A stretch of DNA of 64,000 nucleotides from Pavona decussata (taxonomy: Eukaryota). Where the stretch lies: contig CDRNST010000035.1 of assembly GCA_977016875.1 (NCBI GenBank), positions 1,612,001 to 1,676,000 on the forward strand. The letters are read 5' to 3'. Both the position numbers and the translations under genes were made by a program. Shown one piece after another: positions 31,760-64,000 of the stretch (the first letter of the stretch is position 1; each line of letters starts with the position of its first letter). The notes beneath the pieces are model-generated. The model was not told the origin of the DNA. It did not search any database and saw only the letters and a list, made by a program, of their open reading frames with translations.

Positions 31760-31924
31760 AGTAGTAAGGGGAGCGGATATAGGTCATAGCCAATCAGCGT
31801 CGAGTATTTGGGTCACGTGCACATTCCATTCTGATGACGTCACAGTTTTTAATTTATGCTAATGTAAGCTAATGTATGCCACTCTCCAGGGTGGGGTCAG
31901 TACAAAATTGGCGTTTTAAAAAAA
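31760..31924 (+). repeat. Left terminal inverted repeat
   Basis: Reverse complement of 56910-57079. Apart from one extra terminal AGT on the right, there is 1 indel and 2 substitutions over the first ~145 bp, then further mismatches. Confidence 0.95.
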
Positions 31925-33991: not shown

Positions 33992-34022
33992 CTGGAATGA
34001 CGCTGCAAATGAAGCGGCGCTT

Positions 34023-37945: not shown

Positions 37946-37981
37946 GATGAGACGAATGAAGCAGAAGCCGAGTGATCTCTC

Positions 37982-38131: not shown

Positions 38132-38170
38132 GAAAAAACGAAGAGGGACGCAGATAACGTTTTTTCCAAG

Positions 38171-38734: not shown

Positions 38735-38783
38735 ACATGTTTTAATCACCAAACTTGTAACAAAGTGATTACAATAAAAGATG

Positions 38784-39155: not shown

Positions 39156-39157
39156 GT

Positions 39158-39802: not shown

Positions 39803-40118
39803 GAGGACAACAAGTTGAGAGCACGGTGTTTAATGCGTTCCAAAGTCCTCCACCTTTCTGCTTTTGTAGCGTTTCGCGTCTCTTTTTAAGCGAGGATCGT
39901 CGTTTTCCAATGGTGCGAAGCGAGCGTCGGTAGGGTCGTAGTTTCGCCATCGTAACGGGTGAGAGTGGTATGTTATTTTTCAAGGTATTCAACACCAATT
40001 CGCTGACAGAGTTGATCTGATCTTTGTTGGCATGACGAAGCAAGTCGTTTCGACGACGTCGATTGGCTGTTTTCAATACGTTTCGTAAAAAAGGCAAGTT
40101 CCGACGTATTCTCTTCAT
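39795..40118 (-). CDS. Small basic Polinton protein with a QKGGG putative protease site
   Basis: ELVLNTLKNNIPLS...LRPYRRSLR...QKQKGGGLW resembles small basic proteins typical of Mavericks. Confidence 0.75.
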   Translation of the reverse strand: MKRIRRNLPFLRNVLKTANRRRRNDLLRHANKDQINSVSELVLNTLKNNIPLSPVTMAKLRPYRRSLRTIGKRRSSLKKRRETLQKQKGGGLWNALNTVLSTCCPHG

Positions 40119-40122
40119 GCTT

Positions 40123-40296
40123 CTAACGCTTTCTCGTTCTTCTAAGCTTCTTTAAAGCAAAGGTGGCTCCTTTTATTGCCAAGTTTCTGGCTAACCTTTT
40201 AGCCATATTTTTCGCCATATTCCCAAAAATATTTCCACCATAATGTCTCATTTGTTTTCGTCGAGCACGACGACGACGCTTGACAATGCCTACCAT
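40123..40296 (-). CDS. 57-aa Arg-rich peptide (below the ORF-track cutoff), putative core or membrane-active protein
   Basis: MVGIVKRRRRARRKQMRHYGGNIFGNMAKNMAKRLARNLAIKGATFALKKLRRTRKR*; it fills the gap between neighbouring ORFs. Confidence 0.65.
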   Translation of the reverse strand: MVGIVKRRRRARRKQMRHYGGNIFGNMAKNMAKRLARNLAIKGATFALKKLRRTRKR

Positions 40297-40341
40297 GATT
40301 AAAACACCATCAGGGTTTGTTTCTTTTTATACTTTTTTTTC

Positions 40342-41307
40342 TCAACCTCCTCGACCACGCCCCCGGCCGCGTCCTCGACCACGTCCTCTACCTGAGGCTC
40401 TTGAAGCTCTTGAAGCTCTTGAAGCTCTTGATCCTCCTGAGGCTCTTGATCCTCCTGAACCCCCACTAGCCGAAAAGGAAGTTCGGGTAACTTCAGGATT
40501 GTTGGGATCATCTTTGTAAGTGGTCGTAATGGTATTGGTGTGAGTTACACCCGCCACGCGACGACCACGCGCTATTTGTAAATTGTCTTGTTGCAATCGA
40601 TCCAATTGACGCATAAGACCAGCTTGACGTCGACGTCGATTGCTGGAAGGGGGTGTGCCTCCTCCAGGTGAACCACCACCTCCAGGTGAACCACCACCAC
40701 CGGGTGAACCACCACCACCACCACCACCTCCTCCTCCTCCAGGTGAACCACCACCTCCACTACCTCCTCCACCTCTTGGAGGTGTACGTCTTGGAGGGGT
40801 ACGACCTCCTGTTGCTCCTGTTGCTGTTGCTGTTGCTGGAGCAGCGGCGGCCGCACGTCGTCTAGCTATACGTAAAATATTGGGCATGGGACGACCACGG
40901 GGTGTGCTTGGAGGAGGTTGTTGTTGGGGTGATGGCCACTGTTGAGCCCAACTGGCTTGAGAAGCTGGAGAAGCTTGAGAAGCTGGAGATAGTGTGGGTG
41001 GAGTTGGACCCATGGGAATGGGACTGAGATTGACACCAAAGGGATCTGGTCCTGGAGAAGGTCCAAGCGGAGAGGAAGTGGATACTCGAATCACATTTTC
41101 TCTGTCCATAGCATCGGTACTGACTCCAGATCGAGCCGCTGCTTGTCGTAAGAATTGATCATACCCTGACGGGGAGTCCAAATCGGGCCCTCGCAAGGCA
41201 TCTCCAATGTTGGCCATAAACCCGTCTGGGCTACTACTGGCTGATTGTTGTCTTTGGTATTGTTCCAGTAAATCAGATGTGGTCCAACTCATGGTCGACG
41301 TTTGCAC
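40342..41307 (-). CDS. Low-complexity Gly/Pro/Arg-rich protein with an (RG)n tail
   Basis: 321-aa ORF with SPGGGG and SRA repeats and C-terminal GRGRGRGRG. Confidence 0.65.
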   Translation of the reverse strand: MQTSTMSWTTSDLLEQYQRQQSASSSPDGFMANIGDALRGPDLDSPSGYDQFLRQAAARSGVSTDAMDRENVIRVSTSSPLGPSPGPDPFGVNLSPIPMGPTPPTLSPASQASPASQASWAQQWPSPQQQPPPSTPRGRPMPNILRIARRRAAAAAPATATATGATGGRTPPRRTPPRGGGGSGGGGSPGGGGGGGGGGGSPGGGGSPGGGGSPGGGTPPSSNRRRRQAGLMRQLDRLQQDNLQIARGRRVAGVTHTNTITTTYKDDPNNPEVTRTSFSASGGSGGSRASGGSRASRASRASRASGRGRGRGRGRGRGRGG

Positions 41308-41951
41308 ACGGTCGTATACCCTTCTCCTTTTAAAATGTTACTTTTTAAACGTTCGTCGTCGGAGGAACTTGGATGTAAATCAAAGAGTAAATAACCGTAC
41401 GGGCGTTTGGTAGATTCACGGTAGACTTGAAGCACGTCTTCCCAATCGGACGGAAAGGACTGCAAAGCTAAATTGCGCACACCCAATTGATCGCGCGGGT
41501 TTTTAAAGGCTATGATGTAGTGTGCATTCCTAGAGATGGTTTTGGCGTATTTGCCTGGAGGAAACATGTCTTGACACAGATACAAGACGGTCACATTACG
41601 ATGATGTGAATCTTTAGTAAATAAATCCAATACGCGCTTGTCATTGCTCCCTTCGGCCATGAGATCATCCAACACTAAAATGCCACCTTTTTGTTTTCCG
41701 AACCATTGATGGAGTTGATCCGTGTCGGGGATGCTTTCATGCATGCGGATTCCCTTTTTTGCCAAGTTCTTGAATTGATCTTGCCAAATGCCATAGCAAT
41801 AATGAACGTTGGGTGGACACTCTTTGAATAAAGTGGCTTTTTCTTCCAATATCTTGTCCACCAACCAGGATTTTCCGCACGAGGAAGGACCCACCAATAA
41901 AATGCTACTTGGAGAACGAAAATAAAATGCATGACATTCCATTTTTTTCAA
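41289..41951 (-). CDS. DNA packaging ATPase (A32/FtsK-HerA family)
   Basis: Walker A GPSSCGKS, Walker B ILVLDDLM, SHHRNVTVLYLCQ, and RPYGYL. Confidence 0.93.
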   Translation of the reverse strand: MKKMECHAFYFRSPSSILLVGPSSCGKSWLVDKILEEKATLFKECPPNVHYCYGIWQDQFKNLAKKGIRMHESIPDTDQLHQWFGKQKGGILVLDDLMAEGSNDKRVLDLFTKDSHHRNVTVLYLCQDMFPPGKYAKTISRNAHYIIAFKNPRDQLGVRNLALQSFPSDWEDVLQVYRESTKRPYGYLLFDLHPSSSDDERLKSNILKGEGYTTVCKRRP

Positions 41952-41985
41952 CCAACTAAATTTTTAATGCCAAGGTATTTTCTTT

Positions 41986-42537
41986 TTATACATCCAAATC
42001 CACTTTACGGAAGTTACTTTGTTGTTTGGGATTCATTCCCAATGTTTTTACATACATTTCATTGACAATTAAACGTTCAACTTGATGGCCTACTCGATGA
42101 TCGTTCATGACATAATCTCTGTCAAAGCAGTTGACAAAATCTTCCATGGTTTTTCCTCTGGCTTTGTACTTGAGGTACATCAAGGCATAATGCCCACAGG
42201 CATTGGAATCCAACGACTGCAAGGGTACTCCGTTGCATACAATCCTTTCGAATTCTTGCCGATTCAACCAGGGAACCAAGGCGGAACGATACCAAGACAG
42301 AGGTATTCCATAACTGTCCATCACTTCACAATCCCCTTGGTGCGTGTAAAAGGAGATCCAATGACTTCCGGGCTGATCGTGCGGATCCGTATTGACAATG
42401 TAAGCTTGAGGTTCGTACAAATCTGGTTTGGAAGGTAAACGATCCGCAGCAAAAACACCCACAAAAATAGATTTGAGATGAGGGTCTTGTTTGGCCAAGT
42501 AATCCAACTGTTGCGTGGTCAAGGCTACTAATTCCAT
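41986..42537 (-). CDS. Adenain-like cysteine protease
   Basis: NTD...GSHW (His), DSYG (Asp), LQ...ACGHY (Gln/Cys). Confidence 0.93.
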   Translation of the reverse strand: MELVALTTQQLDYLAKQDPHLKSIFVGVFAADRLPSKPDLYEPQAYIVNTDPHDQPGSHWISFYTHQGDCEVMDSYGIPLSWYRSALVPWLNRQEFERIVCNGVPLQSLDSNACGHYALMYLKYKARGKTMEDFVNCFDRDYVMNDHRVGHQVERLIVNEMYVKTLGMNPKQQSNFRKVDLDV

Positions 42538-43943
42538 TAGGACTGGTAGATGTTGTACAGAACAGCGCCGTTGGGATCAATGTGCATGAAATTTTCAAAT
42601 TCTCCATATATAATCACATTGATGACGTGAGTTGTGGCTGCTCCAAACAAGATCTTGATTTTGACATCTCCCGCTTGTTTGGGATTTAACATGTCCAGTC
42701 TGTCTCCACAGCCTGACGCCACATTGTCAAACATGAACAAGGTGGTGGTCTTGTCTTGTCCCCAGTGTTCTGGCTGGATCATGAATCCATGTTTGAACCG
42801 AGCACAACTGGCTTCTATCAACTGGTTGTAGATGTATCCATCCAATTGGTCATTGTTATGATTCATTTCTGTGATCTGGTAAGGGTATTCCTCACCTCTC
42901 ACAATCTGGCTGACTTTGGTCGCTCCAAATTTTTCAAAGCAGAAAGGATTTCTTGTATAGTTGCCATGATACGCATCGGAATGGACCATGCCCACTACCA
43001 CACGATTGGGAATGCGTCCTTTGAAGATATCTGTCTCCTCAAACACTTGCTGTCCTGTTGGGATGGAGAACACTCGGATCTCGGATCGGACTGTGGGGTA
43101 CATGACCACTTTTCTATTTTTTAGTCTGTCTTGAACCACTGTGTTGTAGAGATCGTGTCTCACTTTCACATGACACATGTGAAACGTGACTTTCAAATCT
43201 TCCTGGGTCAATCTGACATTAGCATTGGCACCTTGACCAATCATGAAGAAGTTAGGCTTATTTAGATCCAGCTTGATCCTCAAATGTACACCTGGTACAA
43301 GCAATTTGTTAATGTTGAAAATGTCTGCAAAGAGGCGACCTGTCAAAATGACTTCATTGCCACCCGCACAATGGGCTCTTAGGGCGAGTCCTCTTCTCAC
43401 AGCAGCTTGAGCCTCTGAAGACAGACCTTGAAGATCATCATGTCCAAGACCACCATTGGCTCCAATATTCAGGATATTAGCTGTCACTGCGGGGGGAAAG
43501 TCCAGAGCTGGGTAAAATCCCGCGTTCTTTAGAAATGTCTTGGTGTCCTCTTGGCTGTAGTTCAAGATGGTTTCCAGGTAGGCTTTGTAGGCATACGTGT
43601 CTGTTTGCTCGGTGATCAAGACTCCATTGACCCAGATGCTGGGTTGCTGAATCATGGTATGCATTAGATTGGGTGCTGGGAAAATGTCGTGAGCAGCATC
43701 TAAATCGGCTCCTGCTCCAGTTTGTAATCGAATTTTGAAGGAGAAGAAACTTCTCGACAAGTCCGTATAATCCATACTGGGTTCAATTTGAAACTCCACT
43801 GGGTTAATGCTTCGGCTGGTCGGGTTGACATCTCGAATGCGATAGGAATTGTATTGAATGTTGGTAGGCGGAATGGCAAAGAAATCGGACGATGAATCTT
43901 TCACAGCTTCAGAAGCTGGATGAGAGGATTGCGCTTCAGTCAT
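42537..43943 (-). CDS. Major capsid protein (double jelly-roll, PY/hexon-like)
   Basis: 468 aa with YAYKAYLETILNYS, GRIPNRVVVGMV, G.YTRNPFCF and IIYGEFEN; adjacent to the protease; ORF intact. Confidence 0.9.
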   Translation of the reverse strand: MTEAQSSHPASEAVKDSSSDFFAIPPTNIQYNSYRIRDVNPTSRSINPVEFQIEPSMDYTDLSRSFFSFKIRLQTGAGADLDAAHDIFPAPNLMHTMIQQPSIWVNGVLITEQTDTYAYKAYLETILNYSQEDTKTFLKNAGFYPALDFPPAVTANILNIGANGGLGHDDLQGLSSEAQAAVRRGLALRAHCAGGNEVILTGRLFADIFNINKLLVPGVHLRIKLDLNKPNFFMIGQGANANVRLTQEDLKVTFHMCHVKVRHDLYNTVVQDRLKNRKVVMYPTVRSEIRVFSIPTGQQVFEETDIFKGRIPNRVVVGMVHSDAYHGNYTRNPFCFEKFGATKVSQIVRGEEYPYQITEMNHNNDQLDGYIYNQLIEASCARFKHGFMIQPEHWGQDKTTTLFMFDNVASGCGDRLDMLNPKQAGDVKIKILFGAATTHVINVIIYGEFENFMHIDPNGAVLYNIYQS

Positions 43944-43987
43944 GGTGGCTGAAATAAACTGCCAAGATGAACAAAACGATCTCCTTT

Positions 43988-44392
43988 TTATACTGCCCAG
44001 GGTCTTCGATGAGCTTTGTAATGACCTCTGGCTCCCACGGCACCCATTCGCTTATACTGTTTACTTCGCCCCAATTTGACACCTACTTCGGCGGCTCCTT
44101 TCACTAGAGCACCCAACCCTATGCCTTGACCGCGTTGTTTCTTTCTTCTTGATCCGGCTCCTCCTTTCCTTCCTAACACCAAGCCACCCAATTTTCCTCT
44201 TTCACCTCGTCGTCTTCTTTCCATCATGTTTCTTTCGTTTTCTTGAAATTTTTTGATCCAAGCGGGATCTACACCAAATCTACCACCTCGTTGACGTTTG
44301 CTTTTGGTTCTTTTTTTGGGGGCAACACCTGGCATGGCACCATACATGGCACTATACAACGTGGGACTTGACACGGGCGCGTACGAATCCAT
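43988..44392 (-). CDS. Basic core-like protein with QRGG/QRGQG motifs
   Basis: R/K/G-rich 134-aa ORF in the structural block. Confidence 0.7.
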   Translation of the reverse strand: MDSYAPVSSPTLYSAMYGAMPGVAPKKRTKSKRQRGGRFGVDPAWIKKFQENERNMMERRRRGERGKLGGLVLGRKGGAGSRRKKQRGQGIGLGALVKGAAEVGVKLGRSKQYKRMGAVGARGHYKAHRRPWAV

Positions 44393-44398
44393 TTTTTT

Positions 44399-44737
44399 TT
44401 AACCAAAGATATCTCGATGACGTCGTCTTCGTTGTTTTCTTCTGGCTGGACCATGACGACGTCGCCTTTTAAGGGCTCCCCCACGTTGTTTCATTCTTCT
44501 GGGAAGGCTCAGGTTACGAAGAGAACGTCTTCGTTTTTTACCAAGGGCACCACCACGCATCATTCGACTGACTTTGCGTCGTCCTTGTTGAATCACATCT
44601 TGCAGTTTTCGTTTCGCAGCGCGTTTGATTCTTGGTAAGAAGGGCATGGCTTGACGTTTTAGCATCTTTAAGATACCGCCAATACCCCTCCCACCATTTT
44701 GATCCGGTCTATAAAAAGTTAAGTCACCTCCACGCAT
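44399..44737 (-). CDS. Arg-rich core-like protein with repeated xxGG motifs
   Basis: Contains MRGG, QNGG, MRGG and QRGG; ends RHRDIFG. Confidence 0.75.
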   Translation of the reverse strand: MRGGDLTFYRPDQNGGRGIGGILKMLKRQAMPFLPRIKRAAKRKLQDVIQQGRRKVSRMMRGGALGKKRRRSLRNLSLPRRMKQRGGALKRRRRHGPARRKQRRRRHRDIFG

Positions 44738-44805
44738 GTCTCTCTCTGATTTTTTTTATTAAAATGAATGAAATCACATTTTATACATGTTCTTTATATA
44801 GTTTT

Positions 44806-45850
44806 TCAGTGATTTAGGCGCCTTTCAAACTTGAGAGTCACAATCACATCACCTCCAAGGAAATCCACTAGTTTTCCATCCGTTTCTGTCATGGCCACTT
44901 CGATGTCATCGATAACATTTTTACGAATGGGTAGAAACTCTATGTGTCTTGGTTCAAAGTAAACGCGACCACGTCCTTTGGCATCAAACACCACTTCTCT
45001 TATCTTGTTGGTGATCTGGTGCCCCACCACTTGCGTCTGATTGGCATCGCAAAAGACAAACAGGCTTTTGACAGGGCTGCCAAAATTCATGATGAAATGC
45101 TCATTGATGTGGGTCATTCTCCAATTGCTCCAGCACGTCAGTTTCACGTAAGCTTCAGTTTCATCGTGTAGACTGGTATCAAAATCAGTATCACCTGGGA
45201 AAACCGTTTGCCAAAACTTGTTGGGAGTTGGATTGGGAATGTTGGGTTTGTCATAATGTTCAATGTGCAGTCCATAGTCCAGATCATAGACATCCTTCAA
45301 CTGGCCCGTCTTCTCATCTTTTATTTTTTCCACTTTGATGAAATGAAACGCCAACGCAAATGAAAGGCTCATATAGATATACACTTTTCCTTTGTCTAGG
45401 ACGTCTGTGTTGTCAATCAGAAGTTCTTGCTGTCCAGCTCGTTCTTGCCACTTGAACATGGGACGATTGGTTTTACCATCGGCGTTTGCCCATCTTGTTC
45501 CAGGGGACAGATCGAAGTAATAGTTAAAATCAATCCAATTGAACATTTTGTTGAAGAGAGACGTACGTACCATCTTGCACGCGCGGTTGATCATCCATCA
45601 CTCGTTCTACTTTTAGATTGTAGTGTTTTTTCTTTGGTACGATCAGATTCATACCAAAGGGAATTTTACCAAAGACATCGGCTTTCAATGTCGTCTGCAC
45701 ATCGGGAAACGAAATGCTGGACAGGCCCACTTCCCAATCGTTTTCTTGAAAGAACAACTGTTTGGGCAACCGTACCTTGTATTGGTTCGGACGATTGTTG
45801 GGAAAAATCTTCTTACTGGCAGTGCTTGGTAATGTTATGTAGAAGCTCAT
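44806..45850 (-). pseudogene. Minor capsid protein (penton/PX) copy 1, frameshifted
   Basis: N-terminus FYITLPS..S...FPNN...Y.VRLP...WEVGLSSISFP; C-terminus LFVFCD...QVVG...FEP...FLPIRKNVIDDIEV...G.LVDF...VTLKF. The halves are joined if a 4-bp duplication in ACGTACGTAC (45561-45570) is removed. Confidence 0.88.
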
Positions 45851-46927
45851 AATGTGACCAAATCTTTCTTGTTAATCCAACCGTTGTACTTGCTCGGCCA
45901 ACCTTTCCACTGAATGAAAACTTGATTGCCGCGCTTCTTTAATACTTTTTCGACACGGAAAAATGCGTCTTCAGCAATGTTGACTTTTTGTAGATCAGGT
46001 TCGTAAAACGTGCCTTTGACCGCCGTGCCGTCGTATTCTTGAATGTGATAACTCGGGACGGGACCTGTCAAGCGTCGTCGAATGACAAACACTTCTTCCG
46101 TCCATCCTGGCAGATAACTTTTCTTAAAAACACGTCGGACTTTACTCAAGCGTACTTTGTCTCCCACTTTAAATTTAAAACGCGTGGTAGGACGCACACG
46201 TGTGGCGTACAACGTTTTCCATACGCGTCGATCGTTTTGCATGGTCACGTCTTTAGGCGGCATGCCAATGGAACGATGTTTGGCTGCATTGTACCCTTGA
46301 ACCAAATCGGGTAACATGGTGATGTACGTCAACGTGTTATTCGCCGTCAAAGCACGGTACATGCGTGCTTTGAGTGTACGATTAAAACGTTCCACCGTGG
46401 CGGCTTTGGTATCGCCATGCGTGCTGAACAGATGAATGCCTTTGTCTTTTAAAAAAATCCTGAAACGTTTTATTGTAAAATTCACTGCCCTTGTCCGTTT
46501 GCAATTGCACGGGTTGACGTCCTTCTTTGAAAATCACTTCAAAAGCTCTTTGGAGTTCCTTTCCCGTTTTGTTCTTAATGGGAATGGCCCAAGCGTATTT
46601 GGATAACACGTCAATCACCGTCACCAGATATTTGAATCCTTTATTTTGACGACTCATCTTTTGCATGTCCACCAGGTCCGCTACCCATTGATGATCGATG
46701 CCCAAGGCCACCGTGGGATTCGTCGCATACCGTCGTCGCACGGGTTTGTGAAGCGTGTAAGGTAAATTACGACTCAAGATGGATTTAATTTTGGCAAGAG
46801 GTACGCCAGTCGCTTTTTGCAATCGATCCAAACCGCCATATCTTCCAGGATTTTTGGCATCGTAATAGGTCTTGATCACCATACGTTCTAAACGTTTTTC
46901 TTTGTCTCTTTTCCGTTTTCGTACCAT
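45847..46927 (-). pseudogene. Retroviral-like (rve) integrase with a C-terminal chromo-like domain, frameshifted
   Basis: WVADLVDM (D), LQTDKGSEF (D), VERFNRTLK (E), FKVGDKVR, IQWKGWPSKYNGWI. The frameshift lies in the A7/T homopolymer at ~46447-46457. Confidence 0.93.
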
Positions 46928-46930
46928 TTT

Positions 46931-47308
46931 TTACAGTGCGGCGACTCCTCGGGTGAAGGCGATTACGATGATTTTTCTCAACAGCAATCCTGCGATGTTC
47001 CCCAGAAGATTAGCAAACGATGGAATTAGATGAGGAAACTGATTAAATACCCATTCGCGATGTTCCTCGTATTCATCCAAAGGCACCGTGTGACGAATAC
47101 CTTCCATGTGAGTGATCAAATGCAGTGGTGTAAACGTTTCGTTGATCCTCTTCTTTTCCTCCATGTGATCGAGTAATTCGTCTTTAGGATCTGTATACAA
47201 TTGAGTATTCTCAAAATCTTTTTTGCGAACACCACTGAGTCTTAAAAGAAGACGCCAAAGGACTTCCTTCAACCTTCGTTTCCAACGTGGTATATATTGC
47301 ACCTTCAT
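46931..47308 (-). CDS. Polinton hypothetical protein (likely start MKVQYIPRW)
   Basis: ATG 47308 lies downstream of a TATA at ~47400-47407; the ORF abuts the integrase start. Confidence 0.55.
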   Translation of the reverse strand: MKVQYIPRWKRRLKEVLWRLLLRLSGVRKKDFENTQLYTDPKDELLDHMEEKKRINETFTPLHLITHMEGIRHTVPLDEYEEHREWVFNQFPHLIPSFANLLGNIAGLLLRKIIVIAFTRGVAAL

Positions 47309-47398
47309 GAATATTAAAAATAGACAACACCTACTCAAAGCTACTCTAACTACCCCCTTTTTCCTCATTCTAACTGAAAAAATTGATTGGGGGCCAAG

Positions 47399-47446
47399 CC
47401 TTATATAGCAATCGATTTGATTGACAGGTATGATCGCTATATAAAG
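47399..47446. promoter_or_regulatory. Compact divergent TATA pair
   Basis: CCTTATATAGC (47399-47409) and GCTATATAAAG (47436-47446) are inverted copies located at the strand switch. Confidence 0.55.
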
Positions 47447-47477
47447 ACGACACCATGTCATTTTTTTTGTCAATGCG

Positions 47478-48250
47478 ATGGGACGCAGTCACGACGTTTG
47501 GAGACAGCTATTTGGGGTCAGCAAAAAACCGTCCGTTCCAAAACCGTCACTTCGAACGCGTTTTCATCAGTCCATCGACAAAGTCTTTGGTCTACGCAAA
47601 AGGGAATGTGTAAAGAAGAAAAACTCGTTCGAAAAGAATGGCTCGCCATGCAAGATGTCTTCAACGAACAAGGACACTTAATCCCATTCAGCAAATTTTA
47701 TCATACCTTGTCTGAACATCCATGGCGCCGCTTATGGATCATTGCCATTCTACAACTTGTTCATGCAGATCAAGATATCGCACCCCCCACTGAGCCGGTG
47801 TACTCAGAATCCAGTTTAGCCCATCTTCGAAATCTCAGCCACAAAGTGCGCCAAGGTCTCAATAACTTATCCTTCTTACATGTCTATCAAACATGGCGTA
47901 CCTTGTTAACAGAAAATGGGTACGTTCATCCCACGTGGAATGTGACCGATTGCGAATTTACCAGTCACATGACACACGCTAGCATGTTGACGTGTCGCAT
48001 TCTGGAAGAAATCCTGTCATTCAAGCGTCAAGAATGTTTTTTCACCTATGAGCTGTTAGGATTGACGCATATCGACATGGATGATGTCTTTGATTGGTTA
48101 AGAGTTGAATTAAGAGGACGTGATTGGTTGGGCATCGACATACCTGATGGTGCAAGGTGTGATGGGAAGGTACTCAAACCTATAAAAAAGATGTGCAAGC
48201 CCGATGTGTTCTCTTTTGCTGCTGTCAGAGAAGAAGAAGATCAAGAATGA
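47478..48250 (+). CDS. Polinton hypothetical protein, probably frameshifted near 47610-47625
   Basis: The ATG 47478 frame (MGRSHDVWRQ...) overlaps the long frame that continues KEEKLVRKEWL...; the junction region is A-rich. Confidence 0.55.
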
Positions 48251-48275
48251 GCAGTAAAAAAGACCTCTTGAAGCG

Positions 48276-49046
48276 ATGCAAGCCATGGTGGATGGATTAG
48301 CAACGCCCGAACCCGTCAAACAAAAAAGAAAAAGCAACAAGGTAGCAGCCGCCATTGTAAAACCACAACAGCTGCCACCACAACCACAACCACAAATGAT
48401 CAGCGTCTCGCCAACGGCTTCTTCGGCGGTGGACATCATTACGTCAGAGGAAAGTGATTTTTTAAATCTACTCATGCAAGACATCAGTAGCAGTAATGAG
48501 ACCAAAACCACCACCGTGTTGATGGAAGAAAAAAGTTACGATTTGACCGTGTGTCCGTTTCACAAGTGCAAACTGACTGTCTTTGAATCTCAAAACGGAG
48601 ATGAATTCATCAAATGTCAAGTGGAGCAATGCTGCCTGTTTAGTAGCATGGAACGTTTCCAAGATTACATGAAAACCGTGAATGAAAAATTACATCCCAG
48701 TTACTTCAAGATTGGAGAACTTGTTTGCAAGTGTGAGCGGCCCGTCACCCTGAGAGTCAGCCAATCAGAGAAAAACCCCAATCGCCCCCTCTTTGGATGC
48801 AGAGAAAAGGAAAAGGAGGATCAATGTGGATTTTTTCAATGGGGCAACATTCCCCTGCTAAAAAAAAACAAGAACGTTCAAAAAAAAAATCCCCTAAAGC
48901 ATGGACCCTGTTGGAACATTTTTATTCGTCTATTTTTTAATTATAACATGTGGCAGTGTGTTTGCCCTTTTCTGGTTCTTCTGTTCTGTTATTTTACCCC
49001 ACGCCATGATGGGACAACAATAAACAACAACCATGTTTACCATTAA
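48276..49046 (+). CDS. GRF-type zinc-finger protein
   Basis: CKCERPVTLRVSQSEKNPNRPLFGCREKEKEDQCGFFQW is a zf-GRF; a second Cys/His cluster (CPFH...CQVEQC) lies upstream. Both ends may be frameshifted in A-runs. Confidence 0.8.
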   Translation: MQAMVDGLATPEPVKQKRKSNKVAAAIVKPQQLPPQPQPQMISVSPTASSAVDIITSEESDFLNLLMQDISSSNETKTTTVLMEEKSYDLTVCPFHKCKLTVFESQNGDEFIKCQVEQCCLFSSMERFQDYMKTVNEKLHPSYFKIGELVCKCERPVTLRVSQSEKNPNRPLFGCREKEKEDQCGFFQWGNIPLLKKNKNVQKKNPLKHGPCWNIFIRLFFNYNMWQCVCPFLVLLFCYFTPRHDGTTINNNHVYH

Positions 49047-49097
49047 ACAACGTTTTATTGACAACAACTGTTTTTTACTCTTTATTTACATGAGAGC

Positions 49098-49751
49098 TTA
49101 AACGAGAATGCCATCCAAGGGAACATCAGCAATAGACTCCACTATGTAAGACTTGTATTTAAGTCCATGCATGCTGGATTTAAATCCTTTACGCCTTGCT
49201 TCCTTCCTCCACTGACTGAACATGCGTTTATAGTTCCTGAGTTCCCGCCGGATGCAACTATAAATGTACTTAAATTTAAACCATTGCCATTGTCTGGGCT
49301 TAGTGAGAGGTGTCATGCCCATGGGAAGGCGTTTCAACTTCATGTTAATCAACTTCTTGTTGAGTTCTGGATATAAACAAAGTTCCAAAAGTGAGCTCAG
49401 TTCACGCACAATCAAACCCGTTACACCGGTTGGCATGATCTTACGATGCGCTATGGAAAACCTCCAAAATCGATCGTACACGTAGGTACACATGGCAAAC
49501 AAGTTTCTTGACTGAATTAACATGATGGTGTCCCATTGTTCCGGATCTCTGGTAAAGTTTTCTTTTCGATCAATAAAGGACTGAATATCTTGGATAGAAT
49601 AACGAATATCACTTGGTCCCACGTAGCTATATCTGGACATGCCAGCTTCCACCGCATCATCATTGATGGTTTCCATAATGGTCGCCTCTTCGCTTAAGGG
49701 AATCACATAGTTGACGTCTCTGAGCACAAAGGCTTCATTGATGGGATCCAT
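49098..49751 (-). CDS. Polinton hypothetical protein (217 aa)
   Basis: ATG lies ~35 nt downstream of the TATA of cassette 2; AATAAA signals on the - strand at ~49055 and ~49081. Confidence 0.7.
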   Translation of the reverse strand: MDPINEAFVLRDVNYVIPLSEEATIMETINDDAVEAGMSRYSYVGPSDIRYSIQDIQSFIDRKENFTRDPEQWDTIMLIQSRNLFAMCTYVYDRFWRFSIAHRKIMPTGVTGLIVRELSSLLELCLYPELNKKLINMKLKRLPMGMTPLTKPRQWQWFKFKYIYSCIRRELRNYKRMFSQWRKEARRKGFKSSMHGLKYKSYIVESIADVPLDGILV

Positions 49752-49783
49752 GATGGAAATGACGACTGAGCGCTGAACCTCCT

Positions 49784-49934
49784 CTTATAGTCTCTAGGAT
49801 ATGATGTCATCATGACGTCAATACCCCACGTGATCCTAAAAAAGGACGACCCCCCTCCCCCCCCAGGGGGTCTTTTTTGAAGTGACGTCATGCCGTCGTC
49901 ACCGTCACGTGGTACCATGTCAAGTCTATATAAG
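49784..49934. promoter_or_regulatory. Bidirectional promoter cassette 2 (paralogue of 37982-38131)
   Basis: Shares GACCCCCC..CCCCAGGGGGTCTTTTTT..AAGTGACGTCATGCCG.CGTCAC.GTCACGTGGTACC..TCTATA with cassette 1; lies between divergent ATGs at 49751 and 50012. Confidence 0.75.
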
Positions 49935-50011
49935 AAACGCTCATGCCCCTGTTCGACACTCGTTCCAGAGCTGCCTTGATCCAGTGATTGTCAAGACGTG
50001 ACGCAGAAAAG

Positions 50012-50353
50012 ATGTCAAGACAAAGCAAACGTCTAAGGTCAGAGCCACCTGAAATACAAGACTTAACCTTTACCTGTTTTGTTTGCCGAGCCACTTCAGA
50101 TTCCTGTGCGAACAATGTGATTCGTATGCACTGCTGTAACCAGTTTGTCCATGGCACATGTGCAACACGATGGGCTTCAAGCCATGATCGATGTGGACTT
50201 TGCAGACAGTCCCTAAGAGTCACAACAGCTGTTGCTGCCCAGCCCGTTCCTGTGGGTGTAGCCCCTAGCCGAGAAAACATGACGCGCCAGCAAGTCCTGG
50301 ATCGCTTACGAGGATTACTCAACTCGGATGAACTGCAACGCCAACTGGATCGA
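50012..50353 (+). CDS. Constant exon: RING-variant zinc finger (putative E3 ubiquitin ligase) plus a helical linker, ending at a phase-0 splice donor
   Basis: CFVC-x15-CC-x4-HGTC-xxx-W-x6-CGLC; codon boundary CGA|GTAAGA at 50353/50354. Confidence 0.8.
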
Positions 50354-50523
50354 GTAAGAAGATTATTGACATTCTTGATTTTATCATGCGCTCTTGTCAT
50401 GACATTATTATTGTTATTATTGTTAGTATTGTTAGTATTGACATTATTGACTCTTGTCGTGCGTATTACGTATTATTACGTATTATTCGGTGCACTGAAA
50501 AAAATGTATTTTATTTTTTTCAG

Positions 50524-50835
50524 TGCACTGAAAGACAACAACGAGTACTATGGACAGTACATTCCACGCTAAGTCATCTTCTTTCCAATGATTTTTTATT
50601 AGTGGTGATTGGAAATCGTTTATTCTTAACCATGATGGACCATATCATTACCAATACATTTGTTGATCCCTCCATATCAGAAGAATTAAGTCTCTTGTAC
50701 CAAGAACTTCATGTCGATGAAATCGAAGGATATTTTATCCTTTTAAAAAAATCGATAGGTGGTCTTCGTACCTACGGCACTGTCTTAGACTTTAGAGCAG
50801 ACGATTTTACCGGAACACCTTTTGTTTTTTCTTAG
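50524..50835 (+). CDS. Variable terminal exon V1 (CTERQQRVLW...GTPFVFS*)
   Basis: Acceptor TATTTTATTTTTTTCAG| at 50523; open in phase 0 to TAG. Confidence 0.7.
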   Translation, partial: CTERQQRVLWTVHSTLSHLLSNDFLLVVIGNRLFLTMMDHIITNTFVDPSISEELSLLYQELHVDEIEGYFILLKKSIGGLRTYGTVLDFRADDFTGTPFVFS

Positions 50836-51126
50836 CTTTCAAGGGAGGATCCTGATGGAAATTGGATATATCTTAGAGACCTTCATAGACATCTTAATGG
50901 AGAAGATCTTTACTCCAGCAAAGATAGTGATGATGATGATGATTTGTATATCGATGACATCAATATCGATGTCGTAAGATATCGATATAGAACTATTAAA
51001 AAATATAGTTACATCTTCATATATCGTACAATGAATAATCCAAGACGAATAAGACTTTTTAAATGGCCGTTACTTGATTCTTCACCTCCACATATTTCCA
51101 TTCATGTTGACATTTCATACGTTTAA
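50836..51126 (+). CDS. Variable terminal exon V2 (LSREDPDGNWIYLRDLHRHL...)
   Basis: Acceptor TTTGTTTTTTCTTAG| is also the V1 stop codon; phase 0. Confidence 0.7.
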   Translation, partial: LSREDPDGNWIYLRDLHRHLNGEDLYSSKDSDDDDDLYIDDINIDVVRYRYRTIKKYSYIFIYRTMNNPRRIRLFKWPLLDSSPPHISIHVDISYV

Positions 51127-51138
51127 TTTAATTTTTAG

Positions 51139-51441
51139 CTTGAAGAAACCTTTCCAGAAGAAAATTGGAGATATGTTCGATACTTGAAAGAACACCTTGA
51201 TCGTGAAAATCATTACTTGGTGATAGATAAAATAAGTTATGTTTACAATGCTTACTATAGATCTAGTTGTATATGGATAATAGATACCTCTTCAAGAGAT
51301 ATTCTTTTTTGCTTAAATAGCGACCTTTTTACTTTTACTGATGCCTTTCCTCGCATCACCATGCTTGTCTATATCCATGAAAGCCATCCAATCGAACCAA
51401 ATTTTAATTTTAACGTAGACTATGGCATCGGATCATTTTAG
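51139..51441 (+). CDS. Variable terminal exon V3 (LEETFPEENWRYVRYLKEHL...)
   Basis: Acceptor TTTAATTTTTAG|; phase 0; N-terminus similar to V2. Confidence 0.7.
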   Translation, partial: LEETFPEENWRYVRYLKEHLDRENHYLVIDKISYVYNAYYRSSCIWIIDTSSRDILFCLNSDLFTFTDAFPRITMLVYIHESHPIEPNFNFNVDYGIGSF

Positions 51442-51455
51442 TTTTTTCTTTTTAG

Positions 51456-51782
51456 GTCTTTTCATTTTGGTCTGGTCCAATTTATCCTAGAGGAATGGAT
51501 ATAAGTCACTTCACTTGGGAACGTCAATTCATCACTACACAATTAGCATATCAACGTAATACATATAATAATACAAATACTAGAAGCGTTCAATTCACAC
51601 TAGATATGCCTTTTCCTTTATTTTCCTAGCCACCTTATCAAGTTGTTATTTGCGTATTTCAAATGAGACGTGAATTAATCATCACCGCAAGAATAGATAC
51701 AAGACCCAAGTACATACTCATATTAGATACCAAACGACTTTTTTCCATTTTTTCTTTTTTACTAGCTACCTTTCATATTTGA
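51456..51782 (+). CDS. Variable terminal exon(s) V4 (51456-51629) and V5 (51630-51782), or one exon with a nonsense codon
   Basis: Acceptor TTTTTTCTTTTTAG|GTC; the in-frame TAG at 51627-51629 is preceded by CCTTTTCCTTTATTTTCC, so it is also an acceptor candidate. Confidence 0.5.
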
Positions 51783-52191
51783 AGGGCGTCACAGATTTGA
51801 AGCATGGAGTCCAATAGGAATAGCAAGATCACTTATCAGACAATATAATAAACAACAAGCACCCCCTTTTGTAGATCATTATCGGTGTGGAGTAAGAGTC
51901 CGTCATCTAAGTGAAGAATATGAAACTCTTAATGAAACTCTAATGGATTTGTGGAATCGAGCTCCACCATTTTGGTATAGGTATACATCGATATGTATTG
52001 AAATCACTGTCAGAGGTCATAGGTGTATCTTGCCATTCATCCTTGAAGATGTCAAAACATTCATGGCAGTCTTCATACCTAATTACAAATTTTTAGTTAA
52101 TTTATTTTACTATACCGAGGGTGTACCTTGCACCGGTAACTGTTTTCAACATTCTAAAAGACTTTACTTTATTACTTGTTATGTCCACTAG
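51766..52191 (+). CDS. Variable terminal exon V6 (LPFIFEGRH...)
   Basis: Acceptor TTTTTTCTTTTTTACTAG|; phase 0; open for 141 codons. Confidence 0.72.
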   Translation, partial: LPFIFEGRHRFEAWSPIGIARSLIRQYNKQQAPPFVDHYRCGVRVRHLSEEYETLNETLMDLWNRAPPFWYRYTSICIEITVRGHRCILPFILEDVKTFMAVFIPNYKFLVNLFYYTEGVPCTGNCFQHSKRLYFITCYVH

Positions 52192-52653
52192 TTTCCCTTC
52201 GTCTTTGGAAGAGAAGAAGATGCCTTGACTCCAAATTACATCATAAGTTCTCTCATTGAACTATACGAAGATCACATTACTGTAGAACCCAATTATGAAG
52301 AATATGGGGGTATTGACTTGCACTGTATAAATCAAGATGGAGATCTATTTTATTGGACTTTTAATCATAGAGATAGATGGATAAGAACGTCAGAATGCAT
52401 GCATATGGAAATTGATGGTCATTTTTGTTACACGCATGATATAGCTTATGATTTAAAAGCATTCATGGGATTTCTTATTCCCACTTATTCATTTTACATT
52501 TATTTAGACTACAGCATTTCACAAGCTTATTACCAAGGTCGATGTACAGCTAGATTCACTACACATACCCAAAACTGTACTCAGTGTCATCCTGGGAAAC
52601 GTGAATACACCCTCGCTCATCTATCGTTTCGTTCTCCTTTGTCTCCATTTTAG
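52192..52653 (+). CDS. Variable terminal exon V7 (FPFVFGREEDALTP...)
   Basis: The acceptor TAG is the V6 stop; paralogous to V6 and V8. Confidence 0.72.
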   Translation, partial: FPFVFGREEDALTPNYIISSLIELYEDHITVEPNYEEYGGIDLHCINQDGDLFYWTFNHRDRWIRTSECMHMEIDGHFCYTHDIAYDLKAFMGFLIPTYSFYIYLDYSISQAYYQGRCTARFTTHTQNCTQCHPGKREYTLAHLSFRSPLSPF

Positions 52654-53058
52654 TTTCCGTTTAAATTCTGGATTCAAAGCAGACATCGAAGCTTGACACC
52701 TGAATCCTTCATTCAACGACTCATTGAAGATGTCGATCACCCCTATACTATACGACATGAATGTGATATCAACCTATACCACGAAGTAGTAATCAATTCA
52801 ACTCAATCTAACGAACGATTTATAGAACGACGACCATTAGTTCGACAATTGGTTCGACAATTCACGCTCGACATAAAAATCAAAGGGTATCTCTGTCACT
52901 TGCCATACATTTTAAATGATATGGAACAATTCCTTTCGTTTCTCATTCCAAACAATTGTTATTATTGTTATTTATGTTTTGAAACGGATTTTGATGATGT
53001 AGAAGAAGCGCAGGACTATCAATATAGACCCTACGTCATTGATTTTTTTCAATATTAA
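52654..53058 (+). CDS. Variable terminal exon V8 (FPFKFWIQSRHRSLTP...)
   Basis: Acceptor TCTCCTTTGTCTCCATTTTAG| is the V7 stop; paralogous to V6 and V7. Confidence 0.72.
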   Translation, partial: FPFKFWIQSRHRSLTPESFIQRLIEDVDHPYTIRHECDINLYHEVVINSTQSNERFIERRPLVRQLVRQFTLDIKIKGYLCHLPYILNDMEQFLSFLIPNNCYYCYLCFETDFDDVEEAQDYQYRPYVIDFFQY

Positions 53059-53068
53059 TTTTTTTCAG

Positions 53069-53581
53069 CATCACATCCAATTTGATGTCAATGATGAATG
53101 CGATGACTTTAACTCCACTCAATCTCAATTTCCGATTCTATTTGGACAAAACAGAAGAATCAGACAAAATGTCTTTGCATTTACAAGAAGATTATATGAA
53201 GATTATCAGCAATCCATTTATCAAGCTCATTATTGGCCTGTGGGTATTGCTAAATTTTTCAGAACAAGGCATAACCTTCTATGTCAGTCGTTTGGATGGC
53301 ACCGACGAGGACATCGAACCGCATTAAGTCAAATAGCTATATCTATCTATATAGATTACAAAGATTGTAAAGAAGAGCAGACCGTCTATAATGATGTGAT
53401 GCATTTTCTAGATTATCTCTTAGGAGGCAATCAATACTATTATGCAGAAATTTGGGTACGTCCACTTCTATGTCAAAATGACAGGTTCAATCCAAATGAT
53501 AGGTTCAATCCATGTGCATGGCATAGGAATAGTATTATCAAAAATTATTCCATTCTTTCTGGTAATGATTTTTCTAATTAA
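53069..53581 (+). CDS. Variable terminal exon V9 (HHIQFDVNDEC...QFPILFG...)
   Basis: Acceptor AATTTTTTTCAG|; phase 0; contains ISIYID...VYNDVMHFLDYLL like the other cassettes. Confidence 0.7.
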   Translation, partial: HHIQFDVNDECDDFNSTQSQFPILFGQNRRIRQNVFAFTRRLYEDYQQSIYQAHYWPVGIAKFFRTRHNLLCQSFGWHRRGHRTALSQIAISIYIDYKDCKEEQTVYNDVMHFLDYLLGGNQYYYAEIWVRPLLCQNDRFNPNDRFNPCAWHRNSIIKNYSILSGNDFSN

Positions 53582-53598
53582 GGCCTTTGTCTTTTCAG

Positions 53599-54069
53599 AC
53601 GGTTAAAATTCAAGAACTTGAACTTATTTATCATACCTGTATCCGGTTGGATATTTTTATCGAGGCCATGGAACGATTGTTTTTTTCAGGATTATGAAAT
53701 ATTGACTGATATCCAAGAAGTTTGCCATATCTTACGCCTGTTTGATCATGTCTATGATGAATACTTGATTGGGCATCACGAGGATATTACAGAAATCGAA
53801 CTTTACATAAGTGTCACATGTAATCGCATCAGATTTCCTTCAAGAAATGATACAAGACCTATTGGATAAGTCGTTTCCTCCGCGAAATCAAATCACTCCT
53901 CAATTTTGCATTGATTCCAAGAAGACGTATTCCCATTCGATTTTGCTTTCTCATATACGGACACGATCCTAGACGCATGAGTCTTTTCAATATCAATGGA
54001 TTGATTGCCTGGTTGAATCAACACATCTTATTGTATTACCAAAACAACGCTTGGCATCACCTTACATAA
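53599..54069 (+). pseudogene. Variable exons V10 (53599-53697, short) and V11 (53690-53869, frameshifted continuation to 54069)
   Basis: Acceptors CTTTGTCTTTTCAG| and TGTTTTTTTCAG|. An alternate frame after ~53850 reads WISRFLREIKSLLNFALIP, which resembles the family motif. Confidence 0.5.
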
Positions 54070-54086
54070 CTTTTTTCTTTTTTTAG

Positions 54087-54404
54087 GTTTTTCCCTTCAA
54101 ACTATATGCAAGCAATGTGCAGACAACTATACGTAGACTCGTTGACTTTATAAATAGCGACCACACTATTTTCACTTGGGATTTCCGTATTTCCGTCGTT
54201 CCAACTTCTTATTTGATTTCTATATCCTGTGATATAGCCGGTCCAAAAAATAGGCGATCAAACATTGATGAAGACATGTGGTGTTTCTTTCGATATTTAA
54301 TAACGCATGAAAACGTTACCATTCATTTTCATTGCAACCGTTACTTTGGTCTTGAACACGAACACGGTTTCGTATTAGCTAACCATGAGTTCAGTGACAT
54401 GTAA
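54087..54404 (+). CDS. Variable terminal exon V12 (VFPFKLYASNVQTTIRRLV...)
   Basis: Acceptor TTTTTTCTTTTTTTAG|; phase 0; FPFK start and ISCDIAG...IDEDMWCFFRYLI. Confidence 0.72.
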   Translation, partial: VFPFKLYASNVQTTIRRLVDFINSDHTIFTWDFRISVVPTSYLISISCDIAGPKNRRSNIDEDMWCFFRYLITHENVTIHFHCNRYFGLEHEHGFVLANHEFSDM

Positions 54405-54426
54405 TAAAAATGAACTTGTCTTTCAG

Positions 54427-54729
54427 TTCAATTTCAGATTTTGTGGAACGCATCATGCAGTATGCATCATCAACCATTTAGCTGCCGAAATGGAATCGAT
54501 ACACTACTGGTTACCTCATACCAGCGAAAATCCCATGCTTTTTACTGTGCATTTATACATTCACGGTCCCAGAGATGGTACTGTAAGACAAGCTCATTCC
54601 CACATGCAAGAATTCATGCATTTTCTTGATGCTGTTGATCAATTCAATATATCGATCAATTACTTTTATACAGATTCGTTTACTTACCATGTTGTAGAAT
54701 CTAGTCTTAATATTGAATACCAATTTTGA
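54427..54729 (+). CDS. Variable terminal exon V13 (FNFRFCGTHH...)
   Basis: Acceptor CTTGTCTTTCAG|; phase 0; VHLYIHG...HMQEFMHFL; AATAAA at 54769-54774. Confidence 0.7.
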   Translation, partial: FNFRFCGTHHAVCIINHLAAEMESIHYWLPHTSENPMLFTVHLYIHGPRDGTVRQAHSHMQEFMHFLDAVDQFNISINYFYTDSFTYHVVESSLNIEYQF

Positions 54730-56909: not shown

Positions 56910-57079
56910 TTTTTTTTAAAAGGCCAATGGTGTACTGACCCTACCCTGGAGAGTGGCATACATTAGCCTACATTAGCATAAATTAAAAAACTGTGACGTC
57001 ATCAGAATGGAATGTGCACGTGACCCAAATACTCGACGCTGATTGGCTATGACCTATATCCGCTCCCCTTACTACTACT
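56910..57079 (-). repeat. Right terminal inverted repeat
   Basis: Ends ...CCCCTTACTACTACT, followed by the TSD GCTTTC. Confidence 0.95.
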
Positions 57080-61609: not shown

Positions 61610-61764
61610 NNNNNNNNNNNNNNNNNNNNNNNNNNNNNNNNNNNNNNNNNNNNNNNNNNNNNNNNNNNNNNNNNNNNNNNNNNNNNNNNNNNNNNNNNNN
61701 NNNNNNNNNNNNNNNNNNNNNNNNNNNNNNNNNNNNNNNNNNNNNNNNNNNNNNNNNNNNNNNN
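61610..61764. other. Assembly gap (N run)
   Basis: Run of N bases. Confidence 1.
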
Positions 61765-62398: not shown

Positions 62399-63412
62399 TT
62401 ACAAACCTAAACACTTAGATACTTGTAATCTGCTTTCAAGACTTTCTTCTACATACATATCCTTGGCCGAATCAGATTTCCATCTACCATGCATTTTAAG
62501 AAGCCTTTCTGGAATTGAGTTACAACTATTACGTACCGCAGAAGTAATGCCACCGGATCTTAAACTATGAAGACCATAATCATTAGGGTTGTAACCCAGC
62601 TGACTTAAGGTATTCCTTAAGATATCTCTACAAGTAGTATAAGAAATCTTACCACTTCTAAGGGTATAGATAGAACTACTACGGTGAAAAACAGGCGGTC
62701 TAAATAAAGGGAGAGAACTACATAAGGCAATACCAGATAAATCTAAGTACCTCTGTAAAACACTAACAGGACAGTACTTAGACCTGGATGCGCTAATGAA
62801 GACGTAATTCCCTTCCCTATAAACATCCTTCTTACTACGAGGTACAAAAATTCTAATATAATCACTGTGAAATTCAATATGCTTAGGAGCGATACTGCAT
62901 AATTCGTCATGACGAAAAAATCCTGTAAAAGCTGAAGAGCATAACGCGGCGATACGAAGATTCTTTAAATTAGCGTCTTTCTTATTATGGATATCTAAAA
63001 TACTACTTGTGATATCTGTGGTAATAGGCTTCTTTTTCACAACGGGCTGTGATTTCTGGCGTTTAGCAGACTCAACAATATTCCTGCAAAAGTCACTATC
63101 CAAAGGATTACGATCCAAACTAGGGACAAAGGAATGAAGCCATTTAAGGGCGGCATGGGCTAAAATTACTGAGGAACTAGAGGTGCAAGACTGCTGAACT
63201 TCAAATAAATAAAGAGAAACAACACTAAGAGGAAAAGGTAGCTGCAAGTTGAAATGCTTACTTTTATACCACTCAAAAAACTTCCTAATTACGCGAACGT
63301 AGGCTTTAGAAGTTGTATCCGCCCTGGACTTCAACATAACTTCTAAAACCTGATAAACGTTGCCTGAGGAAAATTGTTGAAAACCTTTCCAGGACTTACT
63401 TGACAAGATTAC
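62399..63412 (-). CDS. Tyrosine recombinase (phage-integrase fold)
   Basis: FTGFFRHDEL (R), PRSKKD (K), LHSLRSGG (HxxR), HGRWKS...DMY (H/W, Y). An acceptor-like TTGTCTTTCCAG| at 63413 suggests a spliced start. Confidence 0.88.
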   Translation of the reverse strand, partial: VILSSKSWKGFQQFSSGNVYQVLEVMLKSRADTTSKAYVRVIRKFFEWYKSKHFNLQLPFPLSVVSLYLFEVQQSCTSSSSVILAHAALKWLHSFVPSLDRNPLDSDFCRNIVESAKRQKSQPVVKKKPITTDITSSILDIHNKKDANLKNLRIAALCSSAFTGFFRHDELCSIAPKHIEFHSDYIRIFVPRSKKDVYREGNYVFISASRSKYCPVSVLQRYLDLSGIALCSSLPLFRPPVFHRSSSIYTLRSGKISYTTCRDILRNTLSQLGYNPNDYGLHSLRSGGITSAVRNSCNSIPERLLKMHGRWKSDSAKDMYVEESLESRLQVSKCLGL

Positions 63413-64000
63413 CTGGAAAGACAAGAACAAAACATACACACTAAAAGAGCAAAAAGAACATCCGCTCATAACCGAACAAAAGGAAAAGAAATAACGATCA
63501 TGGGGCCAGTGCCACATAAAACGATAAACCATAATTATTTGAGCCAGTGCCCGACAAAACAAAATTCATTGACTAGGCCAGTACCACATAAAACAACAAT
63601 ACGTTGTTTAAGCCAGTGCCATGAGAAATGATAAACCATTAATTAAGCCAGTGCCACATAAATAAACAATATATTGTTTTGGCCAGTGCCACCAAAAGGA
63701 TATAATGATTAGGCTAATAGACACACCATCAAATAGATAACTCAGTAAACTTCAATCTCAAGGCAATAATATTTCCTGTGAAAAGATCAGACCCTAAGAG
63801 CGAATTAGGGTTCCTACCGTGGGTTAGAACCTCCTTCCCAATATGAATACTGTGGGCCACAAGATAACTACTATACTTAAGTGTAATTAAAGGCCAGAAA
63901 TGAGCCGAAGGCCAAAGAGGTACAACAAGCGTACCAACGGCCTGCTGAGATTTCAAATAATGCAATACGCGTGGGACGATACCAACTGGAGGAACTACAA
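62399..64000 (-). mobile_element. DIRS/Ngaro-type tyrosine-recombinase retrotransposon, 3' part (extends beyond the window)
   Basis: A YR ORF plus an upstream ORF tail PPVGIVPRVLHYL...GTLVVPLWPSAHFWP, typical of the methyltransferase-like C-terminus of DIRS-group pol. Confidence 0.8.

Follow-up and report, generated by a model that had tools for sequence, protein, structure and literature searches.

We describe an array of alternative coding cassettes that would form the 3′ part of a single accessory gene in a Maverick/Polinton-like element of Pavona decussata. The element lies in a stretch of 64,000 nucleotides (GenBank assembly GCA_977016875.1, contig CDRNST010000035.1, positions 1,612,001 to 1,676,000 of the forward strand), hereafter called the window, to which all coordinates without another prefix refer. 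The organization that we favor, with a confidence slightly better than even, is one in which the splice donor of a single exon coding for a RING domain is joined to alternative 3′ cassettes that each end in their own stop codon. One promoter and one coding donor would serve about 11-12 nested phase-0 acceptors, followed by one terminal poly(A) signal. The constant exon 1 would encode a RING-H2-like domain of the ubiquitin-ligase type and a helical linker, and would end at the phase-0 donor. The acceptor chosen would fix the C-terminal domain joined to the RING module, everything downstream of the first stop codon becoming 3′ untranslated region, and the product would be a set of RING proteins that are identical except for a C-terminal domain of 50-170 aa, whose most plausible function is to bind a target.

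Reading frames, acceptors and the upstream donor

Twelve stop-bounded reading frames were found on the + strand between positions 50524 and 54729, each in phase 0 directly 3′ of a pyrimidine tract and an AG (Table 1). To follow them in related copies, relatives were obtained by exact-sequence look-up and contig retrieval. These comprise the same locus in a second assembly (L004), two sister loci with 90-94% identical DNA (L001; L002 and L003), a divergent lineage represented at least six times in another assembly (L009, L011), a third lineage in the form of a 3.5-kb satellite (L005-L007) and two short Logan contigs (L008, L010). The original prediction had counted 13 cassettes, V1 to V13, but its V10 and V11 are one cassette that is frameshifted in the window, which brings the total to 12; this cassette is intact at 126 aa in L001, L002 and L003, and at 126-131 aa when the intact versions of L005, L009 and L011 are included. 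All cassettes are open, with in-frame indels, in three sister loci, and they are also open in the divergent L005, L009 and L011.

An open reading frame (ORF) of at least 50 codons in phase 0 follows 13 of the 16 strong acceptor motifs, compared to 16.6% for AG sites as a whole (binomial test, p 2e-8). Long ORFs arise from phase 0 only, the two other phases yielding short frames. Cassette order, acceptors, donor and phases are conserved in related Maverick copies down to about 36-60% amino-acid identity, the acceptors of L005, L009 and L011 falling at the same codon or one codon off. Cassette content does vary: L009 and L011 carry three other cassettes in place of V2-V5 of the window and a different cassette, “x”, in place of V9. 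Window positions 51454-51610, which cover most of V4, are missing from L001-L003, and a similarity search with V4 found no relative elsewhere. At the V1 acceptor, L009 has a tandem doubling (L009:8520-8560, TTTCAG plus the same 10 bases) of which the first copy would yield a short 26-aa tail in a different frame; the first copy in the window has no AG.

Four pairs of cassettes abut exactly (V1|V2, V4|V5, V6|V7 and V7|V8). In each of them the TAG stop codon of the upstream cassette provides the AG of the downstream acceptor, and the pyrimidine tract codes for the tail of the upstream cassette. Since abutting cassettes share one frame with a single TAG between them, and V7|V8 abut in all lineages, the in-frame TAG codons of V1|V2, V4|V5 and V6|V7|V8 could be read through to give tandem-domain proteins. 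We hold this to be very improbable: most cassettes have TAA or TGA as their stop codon or precede gaps in other frames, V6 and V7 are not contiguous in either L005 or L009, and a TAG between abutting cassettes is accounted for by its second role as an acceptor.

Start codons are not conserved in the cassettes. The first Met lies 2-111 residues in, its position varies between orthologues, and Met is entirely absent from the intact V10/11 of L001. This bears on an unlikely alternative in which the cassettes are small genes in their own right, each translated from an ATG within it or released by spliced-leader trans-splicing of a polycistronic transcript at the AG sites. The acceptor motifs would suit trans-splicing equally well, and an in-frame ATG does occur slightly upstream of the V13 acceptor in the window. 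The first Met, however, usually sits deep in the conserved region, conservation and paralogue alignments start at the AG and, as weaker evidence, an Rfam scan of the window gave no match and thus no spliced-leader RNA. The absence of a conserved start codon, together with the conserved acceptors and a conserved GTAAG donor upstream in phase 0, indirectly supports reading the cassettes as exons.

The upstream exon starts 77 nt 3′ of a TATA-box-like motif whose 8-nt core, TATATAAG, is kept in the sister copies and in L009 with similar spacing to the ATG. In phmmer searches against PDB sequences its product matched RNF126 (E 1.6e-6) and about 15 further RING E3 ubiquitin ligases at E below 0.01, with RLIM, RNF38 and Arkadia among the matches. 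Apart from the substitution discussed below, the zinc-ligand positions covered by the RNF126 alignment are Cys or His, with one extra adjacent Cys. We infer that exon 1 may act as an E3 ubiquitin ligase module, which would bind an E2 and transfer ubiquitin. The phase-0 GTAAG donor after residue 114 is kept in all seven copies examined. Beyond it lies a stretch of 70-170 nt in these copies, with length differences that are not all multiples of 3; in the window this low-complexity stretch contains a 9-nt repeat, and in L009 and L011 an in-frame stop codon directly follows the donor. The variable repeat after a conserved donor and these stops indicate that the apparent transmembrane tail is most likely an intron. 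A membrane-anchored E3 with variable ectodomains was rejected on the same grounds. Reading through the intron extends the RING ORF to 50572 and invites a false annotation as a membrane-anchored RING protein. A second phase-0 donor, TAC|GTATTA at 50479|50480, was also discarded, as a weaker site that L009 does not share.

We infer splicing between this donor and the cassettes, as well as the identity of the 5′ partner, from the sequence. The donor at 50353 is tied to the acceptors by position, strand and phase only, and leader use is conceivable in virus-like elements with an affinity to adenoviruses, so that the cassettes might instead be spliced as alternative 3′ exons onto another 5′ exon or a non-coding leader. 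We find this improbable. With no conserved start codon in the cassettes, a non-coding leader would give no translation from the acceptor; moreover, the + strand exon with a consensus donor in phase 0 that lies closest upstream is, in every full copy, the RING exon, and a minus-strand gene lies between this exon and the next + strand genes.

Several observations weigh against a RING exon spliced to alternative cassettes. The window copy is decayed and probably inactive, with five genes broken relative to intact sister proteins. One frameshift plus one in-frame stop interrupt each of the polymerase and integrase genes; one frameshift, with no in-frame stop, is found in each of cassette V10/11, a 346-aa ORF and a 317-aa ORF located 3′ of the array. 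All five are intact in L001 and L002. The RING exon scores 20.2 bits against Pfam zf-RING_2, under the cut-off of 27.3, and Gln replaces the first zinc-ligand His of the RNF126 C-x-H-x2-H stretch in the window and in the other RING copies read. Eight of the 12 acceptors have TAG rather than CAG, and V4 and V5 are very short. No EST, transcript or annotated spliced protein came to light, and the RING exon is represented in a collection of 5.8 billion proteins by unspliced ORF calls only. Finally, the cassette domains correspond to no known family or fold in the comparisons described in the next section.

Table 1. Positions of the terminal repeats, the proposed gene and its cassettes in the window.
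Feature	Position	Strand	Description
Left terminal inverted repeat	31760..31924	n/a	165-nt arm, 94-98% complementary to 56911-57076
TATA-box-like motif	49926..49935	+	exact match to the 10-mer CTATATAAGA
Constant exon 1 (predicted)	50012..50353	+	ATG, RING-H2-like domain and helical linker, 114 aa; ends at phase-0 donor CGA|GTAAGA
Intron 1, shortest predicted splice (to V1)	50354..50523	+	low-complexity; 9-nt repeat that mimics a leucine-rich transmembrane helix when translated
Cassette V1	50524..50835	+	103 aa + stop; singleton; best conserved cassette; acceptor TTTTTTTCAG
Cassette V2	50836..51126	+	96 aa; acceptor is the V1 stop codon; in-frame indels among copies; weak V3 paralogue
Cassette V3	51139..51441	+	100 aa; weak V2 paralogue
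Cassette V4	51456..51629	+	57 aa; only in the window copy and its duplicate record L004
Cassette V5	51630..51782	+	50 aa; short; overlaps V6 acceptor; kept in the window lineage only
Cassette V6	51766..52191	+	141 aa; superfamily A; orthologues in L005, L009, L011
Cassette V7	52192..52653	+	153 aa; superfamily A
Cassette V8	52654..53058	+	134 aa; superfamily A; L011 orthologue intact
Cassette V9	53069..53581	+	170 aa; superfamily A; 20-residue N-terminal extension
Cassette V10/11	53690..54069	+	singleton; one frameshift in the window copy
Cassette V12	54087..54404	+	105 aa; probable member of superfamily A, added in iterations 1-2
Cassette V13	54427..54729	+	100 aa; recruited to superfamily A (probable member)
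Candidate shared poly(A) signal AATAAA	54769..54774	+	40 nt past the V13 stop
Right terminal inverted repeat	56911..57076	n/a	homology to sister copies L001-L003 stops at 57076

Constraint on the cassettes and their relationships

Between L005 and L009, the ratio of non-synonymous to synonymous substitution rates (dN/dS) is 0.22-0.43 per cassette and 0.36 when pooled (about 120 synonymous and 207 non-synonymous differences), versus 0.74-1.5 for the same cassette DNA read in the +1 frame. The start of the neighboring ORF gives 0.15 in this comparison. Values among near-identical sister copies are mostly 0.1-0.6, from few substitutions, and V1, which has an L009 orthologue at 61% identity, gives about 0.18 at saturated dS. 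Given the low dN/dS relative to the shifted frame and the frames kept across lineages, the cassettes do code for protein and are under purifying selection, and their evolution is more rapid than that of the core genes. Aligned with L009, the window lineage is 36-61% identical in amino acids for the cassettes and 68% for the RING exon, against 89% for the integrase, 76% for the protease and 75% for a 468-aa putative capsid ORF. The rapid diversification put forward in the original prediction thus holds only relative to the core genes, and in the variation of cassette content between lineages; the arms race that it invoked is neither established nor excluded by dN/dS values that indicate purifying selection.

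These data also bear on the possibility, which we rate as quite remote, that the array is a relic made of leftover ORFs from once-functional genes or of chance frames that are open through the youth of the copies. The decay of the window copy fits such a view, as do the few substitutions per cassette that separate sister copies and the conversion, in another genome, of an array fragment into a 3.5-kb satellite that carries no RING exon. Against it, frames, acceptors and stops persist between lineages whose dS runs from about 0.45 to more than 1. The dN/dS between them is 0.2-0.4, the control in the shifted frame looks neutral, and eleven cassettes are intact in L011.

The cassettes had been described as highly diverged paralogues of at least two domain families, produced by tandem exon duplication. 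As claimed, the motifs LPFIF, FPFVF, FPFKF, VFPFK and FNFRF open V6, V7, V8, V12 and V13, respectively, directly after the AG, FPILF lies inside V9 (at residue 21), and the three core strings quoted earlier are found in V6, V7 and V8. Profile comparison, which had been named as the test, revealed significant similarity among the latter three: blastp E-values range from 4e-10 to 2e-6, and hhalign gives probabilities of 97-99% with E 1.5e-17 (V6 versus V7) to 7e-11. They are unambiguously paralogues over their whole length. These alignments begin at residues 1-3, which, with the conservation of the acceptors, agrees with the claim that the start of homology supports the predicted exon boundaries.

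The profile of the V6-V8 family aligns V9 across 101 columns (p 6e-4), in a register that matches the internal FPILF of V9. We searched a set of 60 cassette sequences and 2,400 shuffled decoys with iterated hidden Markov models (HMMs), the best decoy scoring 11.8-13.5 bits. All four V9 orthologues were recovered by the V6-V8 HMM, with scores of 18-28 bits, as were three V13 orthologues (13-18 bits), the decoy maximum being 11.8; later rounds added the remaining V13 and then V12. V12 and V13 therefore probably belong to this group, superfamily A, and their membership is not certain because iterative recruitment can drift. V10/11, V1-V5 and the L009-specific cassettes were never recruited in this search. 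V2 and V3 can tentatively be considered paralogues (hhalign 78%, p 1.7e-5), with an HMM score barely above the decoys; the two share 10 identical positions in their first 23 residues, and the fourth letter of the motif attributed to them, E, is T in V3. No paralogue among the cassettes was detectable for V1, V4, V5 and V10/11. Tandem duplication and divergence thus describe V6-V9 and, through profile transitivity, V13 and V12, tentatively V2-V3, and not the four singletons; half of the cassettes, V12 and V13 included, probably derive from one ancestral cassette by tandem duplication.

A Pfam scan of all cassettes and a comparison of the V6-V9 profile with PDB sequences gave no match. AlphaFold2 (AF2) models are of low confidence, with a predicted local distance difference test score (pLDDT) of 60.7 for V7 and 48 for V13, and the two models suggest a similar order of elements: a short N-terminal strand, a helix, one or more strands, a long helix and strands. 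Foldseek searches of PDB and BFVD with the V7 model returned nothing better than E 0.27. A HMMER profile search of 1.84 billion representative proteins yielded 8 matches, all of them fragments of these elements; V7, V1 and the RING exon, used as queries in word-based searches, led to the same lineages only, and scans of IMG/VR and JGI metagenomes found no match. In the absence of relatives outside these elements among the representative proteins, the cassette domain family is a candidate new fold family.

With no known family or fold and models of low confidence, a role of the cassettes as substrate adaptors is proposed by analogy. We tentatively put forward, as a possibility that we consider rather doubtful, that the gene is a single-gene “adaptor library”, in which one RING module would be combined with about a dozen alternative target-binding domains of a previously unseen fold, the cassettes being gained and lost between lineages. 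Such a library, if real, would provide a mobile element with a splicing-based route to address many host or rival proteins.

The surrounding element and its neighborhood

The array is carried by a Maverick/Polinton-like unit of about 25.3 kb (31760-57076) flanked by terminal inverted repeats, as expected for such units of 15-25 kb. It encodes a protein-primed family-B DNA polymerase with PF03175 matches (1309 aa in the sister-copy protein P0011, E 5e-45) and an rve integrase (PF00665, E 9e-13) with a hint of a chromodomain. Matches to an adenoviral-type protease (Peptidase_C5, E 7e-4) and to a packaging ATPase (AAA) all fall under the Pfam cut-offs. The 468-aa ORF in the capsid position had no match in the Pfam scan, and its identity as a capsid protein is putative. 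The element also carries a GRF zinc-finger ORF and, at 38784-39155 on the minus strand, a phospholipase A2 domain of the parvovirus VP1 type (PF08398, E 4.6e-11). In 2-kb bins, guanine-plus-cytosine content is 0.35-0.36 over 50001-54000, which covers most of the cassette array, versus 0.43-0.475 over the element core at 34001-50000; the array value equals or sits slightly under the lowest bins of the flanking DNA.

The satellite of the third lineage consists of tandem arrays of exact 3,500-bp units (L005:1-20384, L006:1-13100 and L007:1-15079; ENA ERZ26692669 ctg60432). Two adjacent units that were compared are 100% identical, and the array reaches the contig end. Every unit corresponds to part of a related Maverick, from a V6-like cassette without its start up to and including a V13-like cassette, plus the first ~100 codons of the downstream ORF. 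The satellite is a macrosatellite that arose from the cassette array. In the divergent lineage, a Ty3/gypsy-type retroelement with reverse transcriptase, RNase H and integrase (L009:15121-18205) adjoins the right end of a Maverick copy.

The DNA flanking the element has an animal-like character. Outside the element, an intronless gene for a rhodopsin-type G-protein-coupled receptor (7tm_1, E 8e-14) occupies 28651-29577 on the minus strand, 2.2 kb from the left inverted repeat, and sister proteins are present on other contigs. A 387-aa ORF at 62399-63562, on the minus strand, has weak matches to tyrosine recombinases (phage integrases) and may belong to a Crypton or DIRS-like element. Long (AAT)n/(ATT)n microsatellites at 8202-8290, 8761-8826 and 26923-26991 produce spurious inverted-repeat pairs, and a run of N covers 61610-61764.

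Comparison with known systems

Mavericks/Polintons have mostly been described as having intronless core genes and poorly understood accessory genes, and we found nothing relevant in the literature on Mavericks or Polintons with splicing or RING. The closest organization is that of the Drosophila genes lola and mod(mdg4), in which a common set of 5′ exons encoding a BTB domain is spliced to many alternative 3′-terminal exons. The likeness lies in a constant N-terminal domain followed by tandem C-terminal cassettes that are partly paralogous and have their own acceptor and stop. In the element each cassette has its own acceptor, frame and stop, in a phase that fits one upstream donor, and this arrangement is conserved in L005, L009 and L011. 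On the other hand, lola and mod(mdg4) are host transcription-factor genes that combine BTB with zinc-finger cassettes, have separate poly(A) sites and are in some cases trans-spliced, whereas the element gene has a mobile, virus-like setting, a RING constant part, cassettes of unknown fold, stop codons that double as the next acceptor, and splicing that is predicted. If confirmed, our interpretation would mean that a virus-like element contains a compact means of generating diversity comparable to that of lola/mod(mdg4).

One donor serving many acceptors is also familiar from viruses, such as the major donor of HIV-1, the late leaders of adenoviruses and the splicing of parvoviruses and papillomaviruses. 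As in these compact genomes, the choice among nested downstream acceptors would set which ORF is expressed from a single transcription unit. In the viruses, however, a leader that is largely non-coding precedes bodies made up of genes unrelated to one another, while in the element a coding leader domain would be fused in frame to paralogous C-terminal domains.

With regard to its constant part, exon 1 aligns across the whole RING of RNF126, RLIM, RNF38 and Arkadia/RNF165 (E 1.6e-6 to 6e-3). It differs from these proteins by its score under the Pfam cut-off, by the Gln at one His ligand and by having no similarity to them beyond the RING. If the RING exon and the cassettes do form one gene, it would hint at ubiquitin-mediated manipulation of host or competitor proteins. 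TRIM proteins, which are built of a RING, a B-box, a coiled coil and a variable C-terminal domain, diversify under host-virus conflict, and the proposed protein resembles them in its RING, helical linker and variable C-terminal recognition domain. Domain scans found no B-box or SPRY in exon 1 or in any cassette, and the gene is for that reason not a TRIM; its diversity would come from alternative exons in one gene, and not from gene families.

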